This document shows positions 1 through 33,442 of a DNA stretch of 64,000 nt, one piece after another (the first letter of the stretch is position 1; the number at the start of each line of letters is the position of its first letter). The stretch spans positions 1,422,532 to 1,486,531 of the forward strand of contig JBLDXI010000026.1 in the NCBI GenBank assembly GCA_047495785.1. Direction: 5' to 3'. A program made the position numbers and the translations under genes. Under the pieces are notes generated by a model. The model was not told the DNA's origin. It saw only the letters and a list, made by a program, of their open reading frames with translations, and ran no database searches. Source of the stretch: Lepidodermella squamata (lineage: Eukaryota > Animalia > Gastrotricha).

Positions 1-3000
1 ACAGGTTCAAAAGCGTGTCTATCGAAAACAATTAGTAGAAAAATTAAAAAAAAAATTGGTTCAAACTCACAAGTTCCGAAGACAACAACAACGAGAAAAT
101 ATAGCGCGAAAATCATGCCGAATTTAAATATTCCGCCCTTCGATCTAACGCCATCAAACATTCGCTAAAAAATTATGAAATAATTTCATTTTCATGGGAT
201 AAAATTTTTACCGAATTACCTGAGGCCAATCTTTCGCGGTTGTGAGTTGGAATACAGTTCTTTGGGTGAACAAAATTCAAAAAATATCGGGAAATTTGAG
301 AAAATTTATACATGATAGCAGTAGGAAAGTCGTCGAAATGAAATGCCGGACGGCCGTCATCGAAATTGTAAGACCCGCCGAAAAGACTCATACCGAGCAG
401 AGCGAAAACGATTAAAAATAACAGGAGAAAAACCAGCAGAGAAGCAATCGATTTCATAGCCCCACCAACGTTCGTGACAAAAGTTTTCAGCTGCGGCCAA
501 TACCTTGTTAGTTTAAAGACTCGAAGCAGGCGGAAACAACGCAAAACTGCAATGCCAACAGCCCATTTCGGGTTGACTGATTGTAAAATCAACTCCAATA
601 CACTTCCGATAATTATCTGAGTTCGAAAAAAATTCGATATAAATTCGAAAAAGGCCAACTGATCTTACAATAAACTCGAAGATATTCTGCTTTGAACGGA
701 AAAATGTTCGAACTCCCATGGCAAACATTTTGATAGCAATTTCCAAGCAGAAGACCCCAGCGAAAATTATCGCAAAAATATCTGAGCAAATTAACGAAAA
801 AATGATGAAAAATATTGCTATTGAAAAAATTGCGTACGAAGGGTCCTGTCAAGCCATGTAGGCTGGTTGTAGAACTCCAGCCCCAGCGTGATCGCATTTA
901 AAACCACGAATAAAATGATGACCCAGAAGAAAAATTGCGATTTGATGAAAATTCGCATCTGTCGCCGGAGTCTAGCGATGGGCGTCATAGATTTTAGTTT
1001 CTCCTCAGTTTCCTTCCGTTTCGCTTCTTCAGCCTTGTCCGTCTCCTCCTGCTGGGTGAACACATCGTCACTAGCCTCGCCCGCATTCGGAACCGAGGAC
1101 ATGGAAAGCGAAGCTGTGCTTCGGAACAAACTTTTCCCACGCTTTCTAGACATTCGGGCGTCATTTTCTTTTCTCACTGGAAGCAAGTAGTGTAATGAAT
1201 TGAGTTGTTTAGAACTATTAAGAGAAAAATACCGCTTATAATTCTGAGTTTTATCTCGTTGTCGACTGTAGAATCATTGAGCAGGGAATTTTCTGAAAAA
1301 TTCACAGGTATTATAAGAATATTTGTTTCGTCAAAAATTATGAATACCGGCTGTGGTTATCCAAGCTAGGTAGCTGCTTAATTCTTTCGCAAACTGTTCC
1401 TGTCGATGTTTCCTCAAATATTGTCGTCTCTTTTCAACCCTTCCTCGCTCTTTCGCGAATTCACTAATTAACATAAAAAATTAAAATTTGGAATATTTTA
1501 AGGAGGCGTTTTTCAACTCACGCGCTCAAAACACCGAGTACCAAATTAAGCATGAAAAATGTCCCGACAACGATGAGTAAGCAATAATAAATCCAGTTGA
1601 ATTGCTTCCCATAAACCTGTAAACCGAAAATTGAGAAAAAATCGAAAATATAAATAATTTCGACTCACTCCATCGCACATGTACATCAAATCAGACCAAC
1701 CCTCGGTCGTCACGCATTGAAAAACAGTCAGCATTGCGAAGCCAATGTTGTCGAAATTCGTTATGCCCTGATTTGGGCCGAGCCAATATCGACGGCAAGT
1801 TGCATTTTCCGAACAGATATTCGCTCCCGCTTTTGTAGAGCCGTCAGAAGCGCACGGCTTTGGATCGTCCCCACCGACAATTTTACCGGTTTGCTTATCG
1901 AAACACGTGTAGTGGAAAATTCCGACGTAAAACTGCATGCCGATAACTGAGAAAATGGCGATGACAAACAGCAATATCGCCGCGATTTGCGACAATGGTC
2001 CCATGGCGGTTATAATTGCTTGCAAAATCACCCGGAGCGGTCGAATTCTATTGTAAAAAAAGTAAAATTTGACCAACATTTGAATAGGACAAACCGGGTC
2101 AGCAATTTTAAAGGCCTCAAAACTCGAAGTGTTCGAAGAAATGACAAATCGATTTGAGTGAACAGAATTGTGAGCCACCTTAAATAAATTCTTGAAGGAA
2201 ATAGTTTCATCCCATCAAAATTTACCCAGCTATAACGACGATAAAATCGAGAAAATTCCAAAAATCGCGAAGATAAGCGCCTCGATTGAGAACAAGACCC
2301 ATGGAAATAATTTTCACCGTAGCTTCAAATGTGAAAAATATGATGAAAGGTAGTTCGGCGTTGTTGAGAATGAGGCTGATGGCAGCTTGATCGTCATTCG
2401 GTAAATTGACATCGATTGTCATTACAATAACGTTGGCAATGATGGCGCATATAACGACGTATTCAAACACCCACCAGTTGACGAGTAGGGTGCATAGTGA
2501 TCGAATGAGATTTTCTTCCCGGAATAGGTACAGCGAAACATTCGGTCGCGTCAACCACCGCCAGAGGCAGCCGAGCGAAACAGGCTCCTGAGGCTCATCT
2601 TCGTCTGGATTCCACGATTTTTTCGGTGTCTTCTGGCCGTGAAGAGGCGCTGAGGGGTCGCCGGTTGATGGGGTTGACGAGGCGCCCTGGTAGACCATAG
2701 GCAGGGTTGTCATCCAGATCGGGGCGTTTTTCGGCGCCACCGACGCGCCTGGTCGCATTCGATTGCTAGGCCCGAAGGAAGTTTCATAAGCTGGATTGTT
2801 GACAGCAGGTGATAGCGGACGAGCAACATTCGGAGATTCCCTTAGCAATTAAATTAATGAATTTAAATGCTTGTTGGAAATGAGGCTATTGATCGAAGCT
2901 ATATCAAAGCCTTGGGAGTGGAATAGTGAACCCTTACTTCATCAATTGTATTCAGATATGAACAGAGAATGGGCCCTAATTTTGGCAAATAGCTTGGAGA

Positions 3001-8245: not shown

Positions 8246-11200
8246 TCACCTGCTAAATATGTGCAGCATGTGATGGAGGTTGACCAGTGCGACTATGTGA
8301 GGCGGTAAGCAAGACATTCGAAGGCCAGTAGCAGGGTCAACTGCTAACCAGGACAGCGCATCGTGCTCCTCGACTGGAAATTGGAAAAAATTTCAACTCG
8401 TAATTTGATAATTCAATTAATGATGAAAAATGCATCTCAAGGGGGCGAAATATTACTTTTGAAAATGGATCAATGTATCAATATTTTCGATCATTCAAAT
8501 TTTGTATTCCTTCTTGATGGATAGCATTGAATTTGTTAATTCAGCTGAATTATTGCGTTAATGCAAAATGAGCTCAATTTTGATAGGTAAAAAAATTAAG
8601 GAAGACCTTTTGAAAAATCCTCCTTAAAATAATTCACTTACCGGCATATCTGAGAACATCGACAGTCCGTCTTGAGTCGAGCGGGTGTTCTTGGATCGCA
8701 TTGGCGGCACCCGCCCCGGAGCCTCCAGCACCCGAGTTGTTACCGCCAGAGGTTGAACCACTCGCCCCGAGACCGCCCGTGTTCAACCCACCAGCCGCAT
8801 TGCCCGCACTCGGCAAAATCGAAGCCGTGTGCACGTGAAGGGCCGCTCTCAACGCAGTAGGCCTGTCCACAATCGTCGATTGCGGTTGCTTCTCATCAGC
8901 CTCTTCGTTGAGCCCAGCATTTCTCGCGATTGTACACAACCAGTCGGGTAGGGACGGTCCCATTGGCGCGGATGATACGACAAAAGCTACGGCTAGCGGT
9001 TGCTGAAGTAACCCGCTACCAGCCGCACCTTGAGCCGCTCCGGTCGTCACGGTGCTATCGACCCCGAAAAAGTTGTTAGCCGAACTGCCGTACATGCTGG
9101 ACCCACCGCCGCCGCTTTCAACCGACGCCCTCGGCCAGCCACCGCTAACGCTCTGCCGAGATTGTGGCTGCTGGTTACCAGGGGCTGACAGCCCGCCAAA
9201 GCCGCCCATGTCATCAAAACCCATCAAACCGCCGCCCGCACTTGGGCTGGGAACAGCCGGCATTTCTAAGATATCTTTATCGATATCAACGGGGAACAAC
9301 AGGTCCCACTGGTCGCCGTCTTGAACCTCATCAGTGACCGTTTGAGTCTGGGCCTGAATCGCAGCTGATGTTGGGAATGCGAAAACGTGCGTGCTCGAAT
9401 ACGCGGAAGACCCGGTGCATGTGAACAACTTCCCGGCGGTTCGAAATTCAGTGGCTGATAGGTCGGAGCCCAGCCCAGCGCCTTGTAACACCGCGGTGGC
9501 GACCGGCAGTGACGCGCTTGATGACATCAACCGAAGCCAGGGATGCGGCTCGAGTGATATTAGACACGAGCTGATAACGCATGGCACATCGTGGCTAGGC
9601 AAGGCCTGGCAATGGTTGCAAGCGCCTTGCAATTTCGACGACATTTGCATCAAACTTTGCCGGGAGAGTAACGCAGACCAGGTCCGGACTTCCCCGTGAC
9701 CCAATCGTCCCAGCCTAGTCAAAACCAGTCGGATAGGCACTGCGAGGCTCGAGTGGCTGATGGCGCCCTGTAGCCAACACCAAACCCGTTCAACAGCCGC
9801 ACGGGCGACTGGTGGGCGTAGCCTGGTCGGTTTGTGCGATTTCGTCCTCGACTTATCGCCACTGGGTGGTTGTTGATCACTCTGGTCAGGCGGCGGTTGC
9901 TCGAGGGCGAGAACTCCGGTTTTCACGATATAACCGCAGTCATCGGTTAATGATACCAGGAGGAACCGCTGATCTGGGGTAGGGCAATATGCCGCGAAAA
10001 CAACCACGGTTGCGTCAGCTTTTTGCCCGCAACACTCAGCCAAACGGGTTTGTTGGTCTTTCATCCTCGCTAGGACCGCGACAGGGCTATACGGCCACCT
10101 CAACGGCCCGTCCCATAGTCCTGTTGCGTTTTCTGGCGAGTAGCGAATCGGTTTTCGATCCGGGTTCGCGGCAAGGGCGATGCGAGCGTCGGTTAAAATA
10201 ATTTCCCGCATGATCGGTAACGGCCCGGTATCTGTCAAGGCCCGTTCGCCGCGGTCGATTCGCCACCTCGAGCCGAGCTGGGTGTAAATTGAGAAGGCTA
10301 ACCGCCGGATTTCGGCTTGAACAGCTGTATGGGCACCGGACCAGGCTAAGGCGGCGAAGGAGGTCGGCACCATTTGAAGCACAACCCGCTCCCGGAATTC
10401 ATCAGAAGGCAACTGGTCGAGTAAATGCGAGAATAGCCGCAAAACTTGGCAAGCAACTGCCTGGTCGCGAACAACAACGTAACAAACACAGCCGTCGTAA
10501 CTAGATTCCACCTGCTCGCGGTCTGTTAGACTGTCAACGATCATTTTCTGAACAGATCGCAGCCAATCGCGCTGGGCATTGGCGTGTTGGGCGGCGCGGT
10601 TAGGCGTCGCCGGGGAGTTGTCCATGGCTGAATCGATTACAATAGGCATGCGTGGCACTTTTTGGTGAGCCGCAACGGGGAATGACGCCTCGACCAGGGG
10701 CGTGTGGACACTCGCCAGCCGACAGTCGACCATCACGCGGCCGACTTCGTTGATGAAATACTTCAAGGCCAACGTTTCAACCTGCTCCTCGTCGTCGAAA
10801 TTCGACTCTGGTGGTACGGAGGACGGTCTCACGCTGAAATAACACAACCGCCTACCCGCCCCAGCGACTGGTTCCAGCCCGTTCTTCTCCCAGTACGGGC
10901 CCAGGGCGGACGGGGCGAGTTGAACTGCCTCCTTCTCGCAGCTAGCCATAACAAATGGGATAGGAACAGCAGTCGCAACTCGGTCTGGCCCGCTTTCGAA
11001 TAAGCTGACCAGCTGGAGTGGCCCAGCATTAGCAGCCGCGGCTGGAATACCGGCCTTAGCTTCGCCATTTTGAGCCATATCCTTGTGCTTATTGCCCGCG
11101 GCCGAGTGATGCCCGGTCGTCTCGCCGTATCGGAATGCGTTCAACAAAACAGGGTGGATATTCGAGACGATGCGGAATAACTCGGTAGTAGAGCAAGTTG

Positions 11201-14200
11201 TCATAGGCGAGAAGCAGGTGCCTGTATTCATCCAATTGTGGAAGAAGAAGCAGTCTTCGTCCGAAATGTTATCCATCACCTCGGTTTCAAGGAAGCTCAT
11301 TAAGGAGGATACAAACACACTGTTAACTTCTAGCATCTCAGCAAAACAAGTCCGGCATCGGCATAACGCGAGAGATGAGTTCTTATCAGCAACAGCCATT
11401 CGCTTCAAGAAACTACTCGGCGTACCTTTCGACCCAGTCCACGGCCCGCTGAACTGCGGCAGCCGGGCGATGTGAGCGACAAACGGCACAGGTGGACTGG
11501 CGACAGAACACATTTTCTGGATGAGCCGGATCAAAGCTGGTTCAGGGCCTCTCGACGCGCTGTCATTCTTCGAGAATTTGATGATTGCTTTTAAGGAGGC
11601 GTTGCTTGATAATAATTCGCGCTCGTCATCTCGCAACATCCCGCAGCCGTAGGAGGCATAGCGGCGATTGACGACCGCCGAATAGCCGCAGCTACACTCA
11701 GCAATCGGACCAGGCCATGGGTTATCCGACGCGTCTCCACTATTTGACGCGTCCTCACCGTCACCGCCCGACCTCAAATAGGCCGGCCAATCAACGCCCC
11801 GCATCGGGCTATTCGAGCAAGCGCAGATCGGGGCCATGTCGAAGTTCACATCCCTTTGAATATCTAAGACGGTATCTGATATTTGAACGAGTAGCGTCAC
11901 TAGGTTTTCAGGCGTTATGCATTCGAAATTTTTCGGCGAGTCGTACAAACCGTCGACGGTAGGCTCGGGCGATTTTGCGACATCCAGCCCGTTCAACGAG
12001 TTTAGGAATGAAAACGGCGACATAGGCTGGTCGAGTTGCATGTGATGCTCCTGTTGCGGTTGAATTTGCTTCATCGGCGTGCCGTGCAGCGATTTCGGCT
12101 CGTGGCGGAGAGATTTCAGTGAAATTAAGGTGGATGAGCTGCCGAGGCTGATCATTTCATCCGTGTTCGACGAAATAACCGCCAATTGAGATAGTGGCCG
12201 ATACCTTTCGCCCTCGACAAAAGCACACGATGTTTCGGGGTGGAAAACTGTCTCGCAGGCTGAGAATGGGTCTTCGAGGCCGAGTTGCGACAAGCCAGCC
12301 TGTGATGTCGCGGTCGAGCTGACGAGTTGTGACGATAGTTGCACGTTCTGCGCCAATTGCTCGGTTTCAGCCGCCGCGGCTGGGGTGAGGCCGCGTAAAC
12401 TCGGCGGCGCGTTCGTTTCGACCGAAGTTGGCGGGGTTGGGAAGTGCGAGTCGAGAGAATTCGGGGCGGTGCTACCGTTACCCTGTCCGTTGCCTAGACT
12501 CGGCGAGTTGTCTTGCCCATCCGAGCCGTCTGAGTCGACGTCGAAGATGTTGTCCGGCAACTCTGCGCCTAGGCGGTTGTTATTTCCGCCCAGTGTCGCT
12601 AGAATGTCGAGGGTGTTTGCGTTTTCGCCCCGGTTCCGCTCAACACTGAGCGGCTCGCTCATGTCCGGGCTGTCGAGCAGCACAGCGAGGGTCGAGGGCT
12701 GTTGATGGTGTTTCGAATGGTGGTGGTGGGAATGTTGGTTATGTTGGCTATCGTGCCGCGACGAATGCTGATGTTGGTCACTTGAGTTACTGTGCGTCTT
12801 GACAGGTGACAACTCCGCCATGCATGACAGCGAGTCGAAGCCGAACAGGGAAACGAGATCATCGGCTCCATTCTTCGAGTTGCCAGCACCCTTTGTGAAC
12901 GCACTAGAAAAAAAACAGGTAAAAGAATTGATCGAGGTGGTCATAATAACGTTGGACTATAAAAAATCCTCCTTAAAATATCAACTAAATTGGAGAATTT
13001 TAAATTTAGCCATTAGGGTCTACTAAATGTATAACCTTTTTTATGGTTTTGATCCTCCATTTCAAAATCCATAGGAATTTATTAGAATTTCGGAGATTCG
13101 AAGGCATTTCTTTCTGTAATTTAATTTGAATTTTCAGTGTCCCATTTTTCGAGTTTTCCAGGCAATTTATCGAGAATCCCTTGGGTAACTGGCTTGGTAA
13201 TTATTGGTATTATACCCCGTCAGACCAAATTTCTCCGGATTTAGTAATGCTGTTGTCAAGTTTTATAGCGAATTACCCTGCTTATGAGATCCGATTTTTT
13301 TGAGCAATAATATTGCAAAATGCTTCTCATTCCACTTCCGTGATGCTGGGCTAATAATAGGACACGTGTACAAAATACTACACATTTTTATGTTTAATCG
13401 ATCGATTTAGGTCATAATTTATAGATGAAAAATCTTACGTTGATACGACGTATGCTGCGTCGTTGTGATAGCTGGCGTTTTGTTGGAACGTTTTGCCAGC
13501 ATGCTTAGTAGAGAATGACGAAGTCGCACGTTGCAGCATGTCACGCTCGTGAGAAGATGGCCAGATCTTGCGAGGCACGACTTCGTGGCTGGGCAGGCCC
13601 GTCGGAGAGACTTGTCCCGCCACCCCTGTCCCCGCCGTCGCTGGGTTCGATGGCGCCGCTGTTGTTGTCACTACAGACGGCGTCGTGAGGGTAGCCGTCG
13701 CAGACGATGACATCTGCTCAGGCACAGGCGTCGGTTTCTGCTCGGCGACGAGGGTTGCCTCCATTTTAGCCGAGATCGACCGGCTGTCGTCGTTGTTGTG
13801 GGCGGTTTGGTCGTTGCCGGTCGACGGCAAGACGGCGAGGGGTGCGACTGATAGTGGCGGAAATAGCACCGACATTTCGTCATTCGTCTGTGTAGTCAGA
13901 CCGAGCAACGGCGATGGTACGGTTTCCTCGGCCTTCAAATGGCACGAGCGGTGGAACGAGGGACGCCTGAAAAATATTCAAAAAATGCAATTCATTGCTT
14001 CGAAAAATGACTCATTTCTTCTTGATTCTAACAATAACAATAAATTTCATCCATCACCATGGCAGCTTTTAATGTAAAGGAACATCAAAGATGAGCCGTT
14101 AATTTGAGAAAAATTGTTTCAAAATGCCAAAAATTAGGCAATATTTTTGAATTCATCAAATTTGGATCCCCTACAAAGTAAAAGGCTCCAAGTCATGAAA

Positions 14201-17751: not shown

Positions 17752-18539
17752 TCACGAGGTATTTTGCAAATCGTCGAGTCGCATCGATCGATTACTAGGA
17801 ATGCAGGCCAACATTCGAACTGGGTACAGTTCGCTCGGAAAATGCGGCTGAGTTGCGCTTTTGATTACTGTAAAGCCGGCGCGTTTGAGCAAGAAAATCA
17901 CAGCAGGTTCAGGCCTGGTCAATCGAAATTCATAATTAGAAAATAACGAGAGATTAAAACAATATACCTGCACACTGATCCGTCAGATTCATCGAAATCA
18001 CTCTGAGATGAGCCCTTCTTAAAATTGTCTTTTATGACCAGCACTCCGTCTTCGGTCATTCCTTTCTTACATCGCTCGAAGAATGACGTTAGATCCGTGT
18101 CGGTTAAATACCCGATCACCCATTGAATCCAAACTACGTTGTAAGGCCCAGACGCTGCCGGGGTGAAATCTTGAAGGCCTTTCGCAAAATATTGCCCGAC
18201 TTTTTTACTCAATTCCGGGCCGATAAAACCAGGCGCTGCTGCGAGAAATTTCTCATTTTGCTCAACTAGATCAACTTTTTCGAATAGCGGCAGTAAAACT
18301 TCCCGAGAAACTCGGCCTATACCAGCCCCACAATCCAGGGCACGAATAGGTTTCGTCAACGATTTTGGCCCCGAAATTAGCGGCGCGATGAAGTCTGTCG
18401 AGGATTTCGCGTCTGATGCTGACAGATGGCCGTAACCTTGCAACATTCCTTCCACGCTGGGATCGACAGCCATCCAAAACTTTAAATTAGCCTTGTACCG
18501 CTGCAATCGCGACGAGGCAGCAGCGCCAGAAGACGACAT
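17752..18539 (-). CDS. NTMT1: Alpha-N-terminal protein methyltransferase 1 (2 exons)
   Basis: VEGMLQGYGHLS, ALDCGAGIGRV, VWIQWVIGYLTD, IKDN, DESDGSVCR, FPSELYPVRM motifs. Confidence 0.95.
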
Positions 18540-18597
18540 ATTTTTTGATAAAACTCTATGAAAAATCGAGAAATCTTAGCGAAAATAAATCAAAATA

Positions 18598-20321
18598 TTA
18601 TTTCGTTTTGGTCTGCAAAATGCGCTTAGTCGGGTCGAAAATATATCGCTTGAATGGCAATGTAACGTTAATAGCAACTGCTGGGGCATCAGCGGAATCA
18701 TTGTTATCACCTGGTCCGCCCTTTTTCTTCGCAACTTTTTGACTGAGCAAAGCGAACGTTTCGTCTTTCAATCCGTCCGGAATTCTTAACTTAACCTTCC
18801 CACTTTGACCGAAAGCGCCTTCGATGACCGCTTTCTCGCCGGTCGATAGCTCGGCCCGCATACCTTCGAAATTGCTGATATTCGTGTCTTTTTTGAACAA
18901 CGAGCGAACAATAACAGTATATTTGTCTTGAGCACGTTCAACGACGCCTTGTTTACATTTTTCGCGGAAAACTTTGAGAGACGGCAGAGAATTTTGTTTG
19001 TAATTCGTGTCACTCAGTGGATGGACCATAAACGCGGAAAAGGCAAGTCGGCACTGACGAGTTTCGGGTTCTGTGTCCAATTTCGCGCCAACAGCCATGC
19101 AATCTGGCGGGAAAACCACAGGGCGTTCGAACTCGAGCAATGCAAACCACGATTTTAGATCATTCTGCTTATCCTCCGCATTTTCCGGCACGGGGTAATC
19201 GGCTTCGTACTGGTACTCCGATGCAAAGTCGAATTTCGCACCGGCTGGTCCGGAAAAAATAGTCAACGTAGCTAGCGTTGTTTCATAAGCAACAGTAACG
19301 TGGAGTCGAGATTTGGAGACCAAGTCGCCTTTGTAGTATTTGATCCTAGAAATCGAGGCAATCGCCGCGTGGCATTGAGAAAGCGTTCCAGGGGTCGAAA
19401 GTAAAGCTCGTTCAACAAGCTCAGCATCGAGACCGGCGACACAAATGCCAACTCGATCGCCCTGTTTCGCAATTTGAACGGGTCGACGGAAAACTTGCAT
19501 AGATTTGACTTTTTTCGTTAAACCATGCGGGACGATTTCGATTGTGTCTCCGATGCTTACCTTGCCGGTCAAAATTGTACAAGTTAGTACTGTCCCGTGG
19601 CCTCGCACTTGAAAGCAATGATCGACGGCAGCCACTAGGGTACCAGTATCCGCGGCATTTCGACTGCGAGGATTAACATTCTCAACAATTGCAGTCATAA
19701 CATCGCCAACATTAGTGTTCTATTGCATCAAAAATTACCTCAAAATTGAGCATAGAATACGAATATTACCGCAGGGTCGGTAGGAGCCGCTGAGCTTGTG
19801 ACAATCGGAGCTTTCGCAAACTTGGAATCTTCTAGCAATTTCCACACCCTCTGTTTCATTTTTTCCACCTTTTGACTTCTTTCCTCGGCCGGAAATTGGT
19901 CAACTTTGTTGAGCACAACCACAATTTGAGGACAGAAAATATCTGCGATGAGTAAACACTCCGCCGTTTGAGTCTGAAAGCCCTTGGTGACGTCGACGAC
20001 TAGCAGAACGAGATCGATTATGTGAGCACCGCCGATCACAGTTCGAATGAGAGAAGCGTGGCCAGGACAGTCGACGAAGGTAAGTTGAACTTGAGAGCAA
20101 TCTTCGCCGTAAATTGCCCGTAAACGATCAGGAGCATTGACTACTGCTGAAGAGAACCCCAAATCCAAGGTGATTCCACGCTCTTGACTCTGGGGATTTT
20201 TGTCGAAAGCAGCGGTGCTGGCAACGATAGACATGGCACGAGCTAAAGCCGTCTTGCCACTGTCAACATGGCCCATCAACCCAATGTTAATGTTGGGGAG
20301 GTTCGCTTTAATGTCTGCCAT
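18598..20321 (-). CDS. EEFSEC: Selenocysteine-specific elongation factor (eEFSec/SelB), 2 exons
   Basis: NIGLMGHVDSGKT, STAAFDKNPQSQERGITLDLGFS, VDCPGHASLIRTVIGGAHIID, QTQTAECL, VDHCFQVRGHGTV, C-terminal GAFGQSGK and FKRYIFD. Confidence 0.97.
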
Positions 20322-31037: not shown

Positions 31038-33442
31038 TTAGAAAAATAAGAAACGCGTCAATATAGTGGCAATTGTAGTCACAACTAGGAGAACACCTGA
31101 AGGCAGAGACGACGAGGCACCGAGAATTTCCGACGCCGGATCATCCTTCAACAATATCGGCCTGTCGATTATATGAATGACACCGTCTGCACAGCCTATA
31201 TTCGGGTACAGAACTTTGTAAATCTGACTGCCATAAAGCACCTGATAGTTGCTGCCGATGCGTCGTACTTGCAACAGTTCGCGGTAGTTGAGCGTATAGA
31301 CTATCAGGAAATTGTTGCCCAAGGCGGTCTGCTGGGGGTTGGTGTCAAGTTGGGAAATGTGACTCGCCTCTCCTATTGCTTCTGACAAGAAATACATCGA
31401 GCCCATAGACCTCGCCATGTGGCGACGTAAAACACGAGACATAGCATCAGCGTTGAGCAACATCTCTGCGGCACGACCTTTTTCCATCAACCATGCCCAA
31501 GACGATTCATTTGGTGCGAAAATCGTGTAATTAAACTGGCCAATTCTGCCTATTGACAGATGTTGTCCACCAGAACCAGCAACGTATCCCGGACCAAATG
31601 ATTCACCCCTGATGAAGCTATCAAAGCCGTAATCTTGCATGAGCTGAAAAGTAGTGCTGAAACATTGGAAGTAATTAGTTTTTTTCAGTGATATGGAAAA
31701 TATGCTGACTTCATTAGAGGAAATGATCTTGATTTATGGAATATGGATCGACCGGGCCGGCCTAAAAACTCGTCAATGTAGTGAATAACGCCATTCGTTG
31801 CGCCACCCATGCCATATCTCAAGTCATTGATGATAATAGTGGCGAATGTCGGGATAAAACGACCACCAGCGATCGCATGTACATAGTAAGTCCCTATAAT
31901 TTTAAGAAGAATAATCAATTAATGCATAAGACTTTGTAATAGATCAGACCATTCCACATGCGGTAAAAATTAAGTTCGGTTCCCGCTAGAGTTGTTTTGC
32001 GTACGTAACGTGGATATTCAAACGGGTTGATTTGGACGAACAGTTGTAATTCGCGTCTTATGTCGTTGAGTTGCAACTCCTCCCGAATAATGTGACCCTT
32101 TGTGAGGTTTGACAACAGTGGCTTATCAGACACGTTAAGGTTATTCACACCAACGAATCGCATGGAGTCGGTGACTGCGTTGTCACTAGGCGCCATTACA
32201 GTAAATCTAGTTACCGGGACACCGTATCCGGAATGAGACAATGTCTCTGTTAACGGCGGATCCTCATGAACGAATCCGGCAAACTCCTGCAAATCCAGCA
32301 TGCTTTTAAGCTTTGTAGGAATATCTTCGTAAGGATACAGCACATTGTCGATCATGTGAATTACGCCATTTTTCAGCGGAATGTTTCTCGTCAGCAACCT
32401 GGTTCGAACATTGTTACATATAATGTAGTCTGCGAAATCAAGATCTTTAATATATGCGAAGGAAATTGAAGAAAACTCACTAAGGGTGCTGTTGTATGAG
32501 TCTTTGCTGATTTCAAGATTCGAGTACTCCATCGGGTACAGCTCGTTTGGTTGCATCGGTCCGGTGAAGTATACCGATTTCAAGTTGAAATGAGCAAGCA
32601 GTGTGTTCCTCAGAATGTTGTTGTCCATGGTCTTGTCTTTAAGGAGCCGGTCCAGCACAGGAATAGGCAATCTTCCAAATGCTACATCGTCAGGTAAGAA
32701 TAGCGTTGACCTTGCAGGTGTCTGCAGCGTGTTCCATAAAAGCGGGTCACTCAATGCAACGCGGTCAATAAGTTCGTTGAATCTGAATACTCGATTTTCT
32801 GTCTGCTGCAAGAACCCATAAATAGTTTGCGTTTTCCCAACCGGAACGAGAGCGTGGTCAATTAGATAAACGACCGCCAAGGATGTTGCCATCGGAATAT
32901 ATGTGCCACTGATGACCTGGGCACCGTGAATAAGGTAGTCTCCCTCGATTACTTGAGCGTGATTAACAAAGTATCGCAACACCTGCACGCCAGAATTGTC
33001 TGTGACTCGAACAACGCTTGTGTACACAGGAGTACCTAGTAAATATCGACCTAGTAACGTGTCAAGAGAGGAAATCAACTGGAGTACCGTGCATAGTCGT
33101 TAGGACATCTCTGACTGTTCCGAACTCGCCAAGAGGAACAAGGCCTTTTGCAGTTGAGTCATAGATATGGTACTTGACGGTATCTCGAAGAATCAGGTCG
33201 CTGTTTATCAACTTGTCCGATTGCGAAACCTTGTAAGCTTCATCGGTGTATGCGAAAACGGTGAATTTGAAAGAGGGATTTGAAAGACGGTCACGAACTG
33301 TGGGATTCAGGTTAATTTGATTCCTGAATTGAATCAATAACGGATGATGGTTAATTATATCCCAGGCGGTCGCGGTGTTGTTTATTGGCTGTCCCGCAAC
33401 CACCGTGACCAATAACACCAAAAATGTCAAGTTTTCAAGCAT
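31038..33442 (-). CDS. Fasciclin-1-like cell-adhesion protein (signal peptide, four FAS1 repeats, probable GPI signal), 5 exons
   Basis: FAS1 H1 motifs FTVFAYTDEAY, STLFLPDDVAF, FTVMAPSDNAV, YTIFAPNESSW; H2 motifs NGVIHMIDNVL, NGVIHYIDEFL, DGVIHIIDRPI; hydrophobic C-terminus after ASSS. Confidence 0.9.

Follow-up and report, generated by a model that had tools for sequence, protein, structure and literature searches.

A very divergent Cav2-lineage channel gene with lysine at the domain II filter position, predicted to conduct monovalent cations

Cav1 and Cav2 calcium channels have been described as carrying an EEEE selectivity filter in every known animal (PMC4436565). With EDEE as a rare variant, this all-acidic arrangement is given for both families, and a filter Lys is regarded as confined to Nav1, cnidarian Nav2.5 and NALCN channels (PMC4436565, PMC10120453). 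In these three channel types, Lys in the filter of domain II (DII) or domain III (DIII) governs Na+ permeability (PMC6259924, PMC10120453). Nav1 and Nav2 are defined by an Asp in DI and by a DII filter that is shorter by one residue and has no "beacon" position, and the DII +1 beacon Asp is considered a principal determinant of Ca2+ selectivity (PMC10120453). In case of Cav1, any substitution in the EEEE locus drops Ca2+ affinity from the micromolar to the millimolar range, and the Cav1.1 E1014K channel does not conduct Ca2+ and lets Na+, K+ and Cs+ through at Ca2+ concentrations as high as 10 mM (PMC8184209). An earlier reading of the DNA analyzed here, the original prediction, had proposed a Cav-lineage channel with Lys at the DII filter position and had taken a filter Lys as a mark of Na+- or monovalent-permeable four-domain channels. 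The literature agrees with this premise and holds that no Cav1/Cav2 channel has such a Lys (PMC6259924, PMC4436565, PMC10120453).

The window, i.e. the whole 64-kb stretch of DNA that was analyzed, contains a predicted Cav α1 gene on its minus strand (2758 to 1). Exons were assembled by script from the minus strand reading, yielding 12 exons whose joined frame is free of stops over 725 amino acids and whose 11 introns are all canonical GT-AG introns of 47-58 nt. DI and DII of the α1 subunit are encoded within the window and the gene continues left of position 1. Exon 1 (2226-2758), an open frame with a GT donor, was set to start at the first in-frame ATG, further exons upstream being possible, and encodes the N-terminus and DI S1-S3 (Pfam Ion_trans, E 2e-13); Ion_trans was found by Pfam in the expected exons of the gene. 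DI continues with S4 in exon 2 (2095-2178), where alignment and codon positions place LRTLRVLRPLKLL at 2138-2100, with S5 and the P-loop in exon 3 (1669-2047) and with S6 in exon 4 (1522-1616; gene model and alignment). The proximal I-II linker with the AID lies in exon 5 (1348-1463), from which SYLAWITTAE runs on into exon 6 (1233-1292; I-II linker, gene model). Exon 7 (838-1176) covers I-II linker and DII S1, and exon 8 (669-781) DII S2-S3, both assigned by gene model and alignment. Exon 9 (312-616) reaches from DII S3 through S4 (LRCFRLLRVFKLTRYW at 544-497) and S5 to the pore helix. The DII selectivity filter TVFQLTTAKDWPQ is encoded by exon 10 (220-259), which is 40 nt long, and is followed by the outer vestibule and S6 in exon 11 (71-164; gene model and alignment) and by the end of S6 in exon 12 (1-18; gene model), which is cut by the window edge. 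The original prediction of a 40-nt exon at 259-220, flanked by introns of 52 and 55 nt, was correct in coordinates, intron sizes and residues.

Using phmmer searches against the PDB, we found that DII S3-S5 (exon 9) matched Cav2.1/Cav2.2 with E 1e-43 and then Cav1 with 1e-37, followed by far weaker matches to Nav (1e-25), Cav3 (1e-23) and NALCN (1e-12). The DI S5-P region (exon 3) matched Cav1.3 best (1e-46) and Cav2.1 at 1e-41. By these matches the protein belongs with the high-voltage-activated (HVA) Cav1/Cav2 channels, with Cav3 (1e-20 when both searches are taken), Nav and NALCN more distant. The best PDB match of the proximal I-II linker was the Cav2.2 linker crystallized with Cavβ (4dex_B, E 1e-7), and the linker contains the Y..WI core of the AID (SSYLAWITTAE), a predicted Cavβ docking site. 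The original prediction had also called for a phylogeny. In an IQ-TREE analysis (LG+C20, 25 rows, 656 columns), the window protein was placed inside a 15-row Cav2 clade with support of 100/100 and apart from Cav1, and a 35-row quick tree agrees with this placement. The placement is qualified by a very long end branch of 2.09 compared with a median of 0.33 (ca. 6 times longer). Over DI-DII, identity was 42-43% to Cav2 proteins of Saccoglossus, Schistosoma, fish and oyster, with the best values overall at 42-45%. Judged by its sequence, the channel is a very divergent α1 subunit of the Cav2 lineage, and the HVA Cav lineage originally proposed can be narrowed to Cav2. Identity as a NALCN channel was rejected based on the E values (1e-12 vs 1e-43 for Cav2), the intact S4 charges and the presence of the AID. 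Identity as a Nav channel was rejected as well, since DI carries Glu, DII aligns without gaps to the Cav TGEDW motif with its Asp kept and the Nav match reached just 1e-25.

Exon 10 translates to T-V-F-Q-L-T-T-A-K-D-W-P-Q and matches the TVFQILTGEDWN motif of the Cav1/Cav2 representatives in an ungapped alignment. As no gap is involved, G>A, E>K, N>P, V>R and Y>F all represent true changes. The DII filter position is Lys (AAA, 234-232) where Cav channels have Glu, and the DI filter position is Glu (GAG, 1704-1702) within the TTEGW motif (CVTTEGWS). The EEEE (rarely EDEE) ring by which HVA Cav channels are recognized is broken by this combination of DI Glu and DII Lys. Around the Lys, EDWN has become KDWP with G>A at position -1, and the +1 beacon Asp is kept. 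The DII pore is the most remodeled region of the protein in the alignment, with TGEDWNxVMY changed to TAKDWPQRMF and GNY in IIS6 (exon 11) changed to GTY. S4 charges are present in both DI and DII, and good conservation is still seen in the pore helices and in S5/S6. Canonical Cav1/Cav2 proteins share 143 invariant alignment columns; the window protein alters 25 of these, mostly conservatively (V/I, Y/F, L/M, S/A), and canonical members alter 0-3. The main sequence claims of the original prediction were confirmed here: the DII filter Glu is replaced by Lys and the DI Glu is kept at 1704-1702, both with their codons located, the adjoining pore residues have diverged too as judged from the gap-free alignment, and the S4 segments of both domains and the AID core are intact based on alignment and PDB match. 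A six-frame motif scan found no P-loops in the 64-kb window beyond those of DI and DII, and therefore no alternative Glu-encoding exon is present there. We ruled out such an exon within the window, in which the introns flanking exon 10 measure merely 52 and 55 nt.

Base-level support was obtained from public sequencing data. The stretch was found in one public run, X1, which was accessed as Logan contigs and whose kind is not recorded. X1 contigs match the window at 208-389 and 1-236 with 0 differences and a k-mer depth of about 40. The agreement of these contigs argues that the AAA codon is not a lone assembly error, as had been predicted from the neighboring changes, with the qualification that X1 may be the assembly's own sample. 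The X1 short-read contigs hold two haplotypes over window positions 1-2900, one of them without any difference from the window. The other is seen over 1-236 as a diverged allele contig with 17 differences and 5 gaps. Both allele contigs stop at 236 and the next contig begins at 208. Such contig ends in a k=31 de Bruijn graph imply that the alleles share positions 207-236 including the Lys codon, so that AAA is probably carried by both haplotypes. The 40 listed haplotype differences (57 more exist) divide into 22 within introns (582 bases) and 18 within exons (2176 bases). Each of the 18 listed in exons is a synonymous third-position change, an outcome with a chance probability of about 1e-10 if roughly 1/4 of random coding changes are taken as synonymous. 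This result indicates strong present-day purifying selection and validates the exon model. The channel gene is under purifying selection. Among the public runs searched, no RNA run with the channel stretch was found.

To place the Lys among known sequences, we searched 1.84 billion representatives with exon 9 in a full HMMER scan, which gave 3182 matches. The 30 source names obtained among these were Cav2 and Cav1 channels of many phyla. The matches were canonical Cav channels that reached about 55% identity at most, with no ortholog among them, and a short-fragment word-indexed search yielded nothing above 50% identity. In the best 150 of the 3182 representatives, the DII filter residue was Glu in 113, Asp in 7, Ala in 3 and Lys in 1, with 26 not covering the site. 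The lone Lys (P0063) was rejected as the broken end of a 181-residue fragment, leaving 0 true Lys among these 150. Deviations of another kind were seen in Cav2-like proteins: Ala (TGADW) in Crassostrea (XP_078326088.1) and Bulinus (KAH9505336.1), Asp (TGDDW) in Seison (KAI3378494.1), and, in a Cav2 paralog of Hydra (XP_065647840.1), DIII and DIV filters that look EEDD-like. These Cav2-clade filters contradict the review rule of always EEEE or EDEE. The mollusc Ala filter is found in one predicted isoform (X17) and may represent an alternative exon. A JGI metagenome scan for channel orthologs returned a single locus (Ga0181612_117386) and no ortholog; by tblastn, this locus is a vertebrate-like gene of the skeletal-muscle L-type with a canonical TGEDW motif and was rejected. 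Its long introns within a metagenome contig suggest that it is probably host or contaminant DNA, possibly human. A full-text literature search found no report of a Lys-bearing Cav2 filter.

Several other features of the window were observed. A single uninterrupted ORF of 1436 residues (8634-12944, minus strand) contains Mediator Med13 C-terminal and MedPIWI MID domains. Its region has a GC content of 50-55% compared with about 40% elsewhere in the window, and an intronless exon of 4.3 kb is unusual beside genes rich in 50-nt introns. A gene for the selenocysteine-specific elongation factor eEFSec is split over several ORFs (17919-20321, minus strand). Its sole close relative among 5.8 billion proteins, at 68% identity, is intronless and located on a 2-kb ENA metagenome contig (ERZ27332993), and eEFSec proteins of named animals show about 45% identity. 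This pattern indicates that the host animal has no close annotated relative. Further, an ORF of 387 residues (31915-33078, minus strand) encodes two fasciclin (FAS1) domains. No Rfam families were found in the 64-kb window.

Taken together, the locus encodes a real, intact, selectively maintained and very divergent Cav2 α1 subunit, and we consider it somewhat better than an even chance (roughly 0.55) that the DII Lys makes it a voltage-gated, β-dependent monovalent cation channel and not a path for Ca2+ entry. The ammonium group of the Lys would occupy or neutralize the carboxylate ring, and the micromolar Ca2+ site would be abolished. Depolarization would then elicit a mainly monovalent current (Na+ in, K+ out), similar to engineered Cav1 E-to-K pores, and the channel, dependent on a β subunit, would serve to depolarize the membrane and not to admit Ca2+. 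As the beacon Asp is kept in DII, some external Ca2+ block as in NALCN may occur. Since Cav1 E-to-K mutants lose Ca2+ conductance and pass Na+ and K+, we infer a monovalent channel that is not necessarily Na+-selective. Of the original wording, "monovalent-permeable" is the better supported part and "Na+ channel" the less supported one, given that the Cav1 E-to-K mutants are non-selective (PMC8184209). The best-studied E-to-K analogues sit in DIII of Cav1 whereas the window Lys sits in DII of Cav2. Classical work on Cav1.2 found the DII filter position to be less critical than that of DIII. CACNA1C-E1115K is reportedly a non-selective monovalent cation channel, going by the title of a 2019 study by Ye et al.

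The other pore substitutions could either compensate for the Lys or close the pore. In the latter case, Lys and the further changes would shut permeation and leave a voltage sensor or scaffold that works by conformational coupling, as does Cav1.1 in teleost skeletal muscle. Natural non-conducting Cav1.1 channels arise via pore-loop changes including N617D at the Asn of the DII EDWN motif (PMC8184209), and the residue matching N617 is Pro in the window protein. Conservation of the sensors and the AID next to the most remodeled pore would be expected of such a protein, and purifying selection fits it equally well. However, this precedent is a Cav1 channel coupled to RyR and not a Cav2 channel, the E-to-K mutants pass monovalent ions instead of being shut (PMC8184209), and the pore helices and S5/S6 are still well conserved. 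We therefore hold a non-conducting channel to be unlikely, if worth keeping in mind. Acidic residues other than the lost Glu (DI Glu, DII +1 Asp and presumed acidic residues in DIII/DIV) might also sustain divalent permeation, so that the channel would still be Ca2+-permeable with lowered selectivity or affinity. The beacon Asp kept in KDW is a selectivity determinant (PMC10120453), and Ala or Asp at the site in oyster, snail and Seison Cav2-like proteins indicates that the position tolerates change. This must be set against the loss of Ca2+ affinity from micromolar to millimolar upon any EEEE-locus substitution (PMC8184209) and against a positive charge being the most disruptive change possible, and continued Ca2+ permeation appears doubtful to us.

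A duplicate that is decaying or dispensable, or an error of assembly or base calling at the Lys codon, would agree with the very long branch in the careful tree, with the lack of orthologs among 1.84 billion representatives and in the short-fragment search, and with the lack of an RNA run among the public runs searched. It is very unlikely in view of the open frame of 725 residues with 11 canonical introns, the ratio of 18 synonymous to 0 non-synonymous listed polymorphisms, the presence of AAA in short-read contigs at about 40x and apparently in both haplotypes, and the change of four adjoining residues as well. Recoding of AAA by A-to-I editing, to GAA (Glu) or AGA (Arg), would tune selectivity at the post-transcriptional level, in the manner of the GluA2 Q/R site. 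Reading IAA for AAA would give back precisely the lost Glu, a merely logical possibility. Exon 10 and its flanking introns fold no better than shuffled sequences (z = +0.39), so that no editing duplex is evident around exon 10, and we regard editing as highly improbable. A monovalent Cav2-derived channel could have a wider role if the duties of four-domain channels have been reshuffled and it provides the animal's main voltage-gated Na+ conductance. We consider this improbable; if true, Lys-based sodium channels would have arisen independently once more, this time from the calcium-channel lineage.

A naturally selected Cav2 channel with a DII Lys would be the first exception, as regards a filter Lys, to the all-acidic Cav1/Cav2 filter rule of two reviews. 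A single E-to-K change is pathogenic in humans. The locus may offer a natural experiment in turning a Ca2+ pore into a monovalent pore, showing which substitutions evolution added to E-to-K. It also raises the question of the role of a Cavβ-dependent, presumably presynaptic-type channel that would no longer admit Ca2+.

Compared with known systems, the window protein is closest to Cav2 (N/P/Q/R-type, cacophony/UNC-2), with which it shares the clade, the Cav2-type I-II linker and AID, the S4 charge pattern and the DI TxEGW motif. It differs from Cav2 in the DII Lys, the change of EDWN to KDWP, the altered invariant HVA columns and the long branch, and the QxxER Gβγ motif of the linker, as read from the alignment, is not kept. 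NALCN channels with an EKEE filter (molluscs, annelids, echinoderms, flatworms) resemble it in DI Glu, DII Lys, an Asp beacon and membership of the four-domain family. In contrast to the window protein with its fully charged S4 and its AID, NALCN has a charge-poor S4 and no AID, and its beacon Asp lies in DIV instead of DII. NALCN exons 15a and 15b further constitute an alternative-splicing choice, whereas the Lys of the window gene exists in a single version in the 64-kb scan. Cnidarian Nav2.5 (DKEA) and bilaterian Nav1 (DEKA) likewise gained a filter Lys independently, in DII in the cnidarian case, and are Na+-selective. Their filter starts with Asp (DI) and ends with Ala (DIV), and its DII part is one residue shorter and lacks a beacon position, while the window protein has a DII filter of Cav length and DI Glu. 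The Cav1.1 E1014K and Cav1.2 E1115K channels are HVA channels in which Glu has likewise given way to Lys within the EEEE locus. Both changes lie in DIII and are alleles from the laboratory or from disease, whereas the window Lys is a natural DII residue, accompanied by further pore changes and kept by selection. Finally, the Cav2-like proteins of Crassostrea, Bulinus, Seison and Hydra are also Cav2-clade members that depart from the EEEE rule. At 38-45% identity they are no close relatives of the window protein, and their filter site lacks a positive charge.
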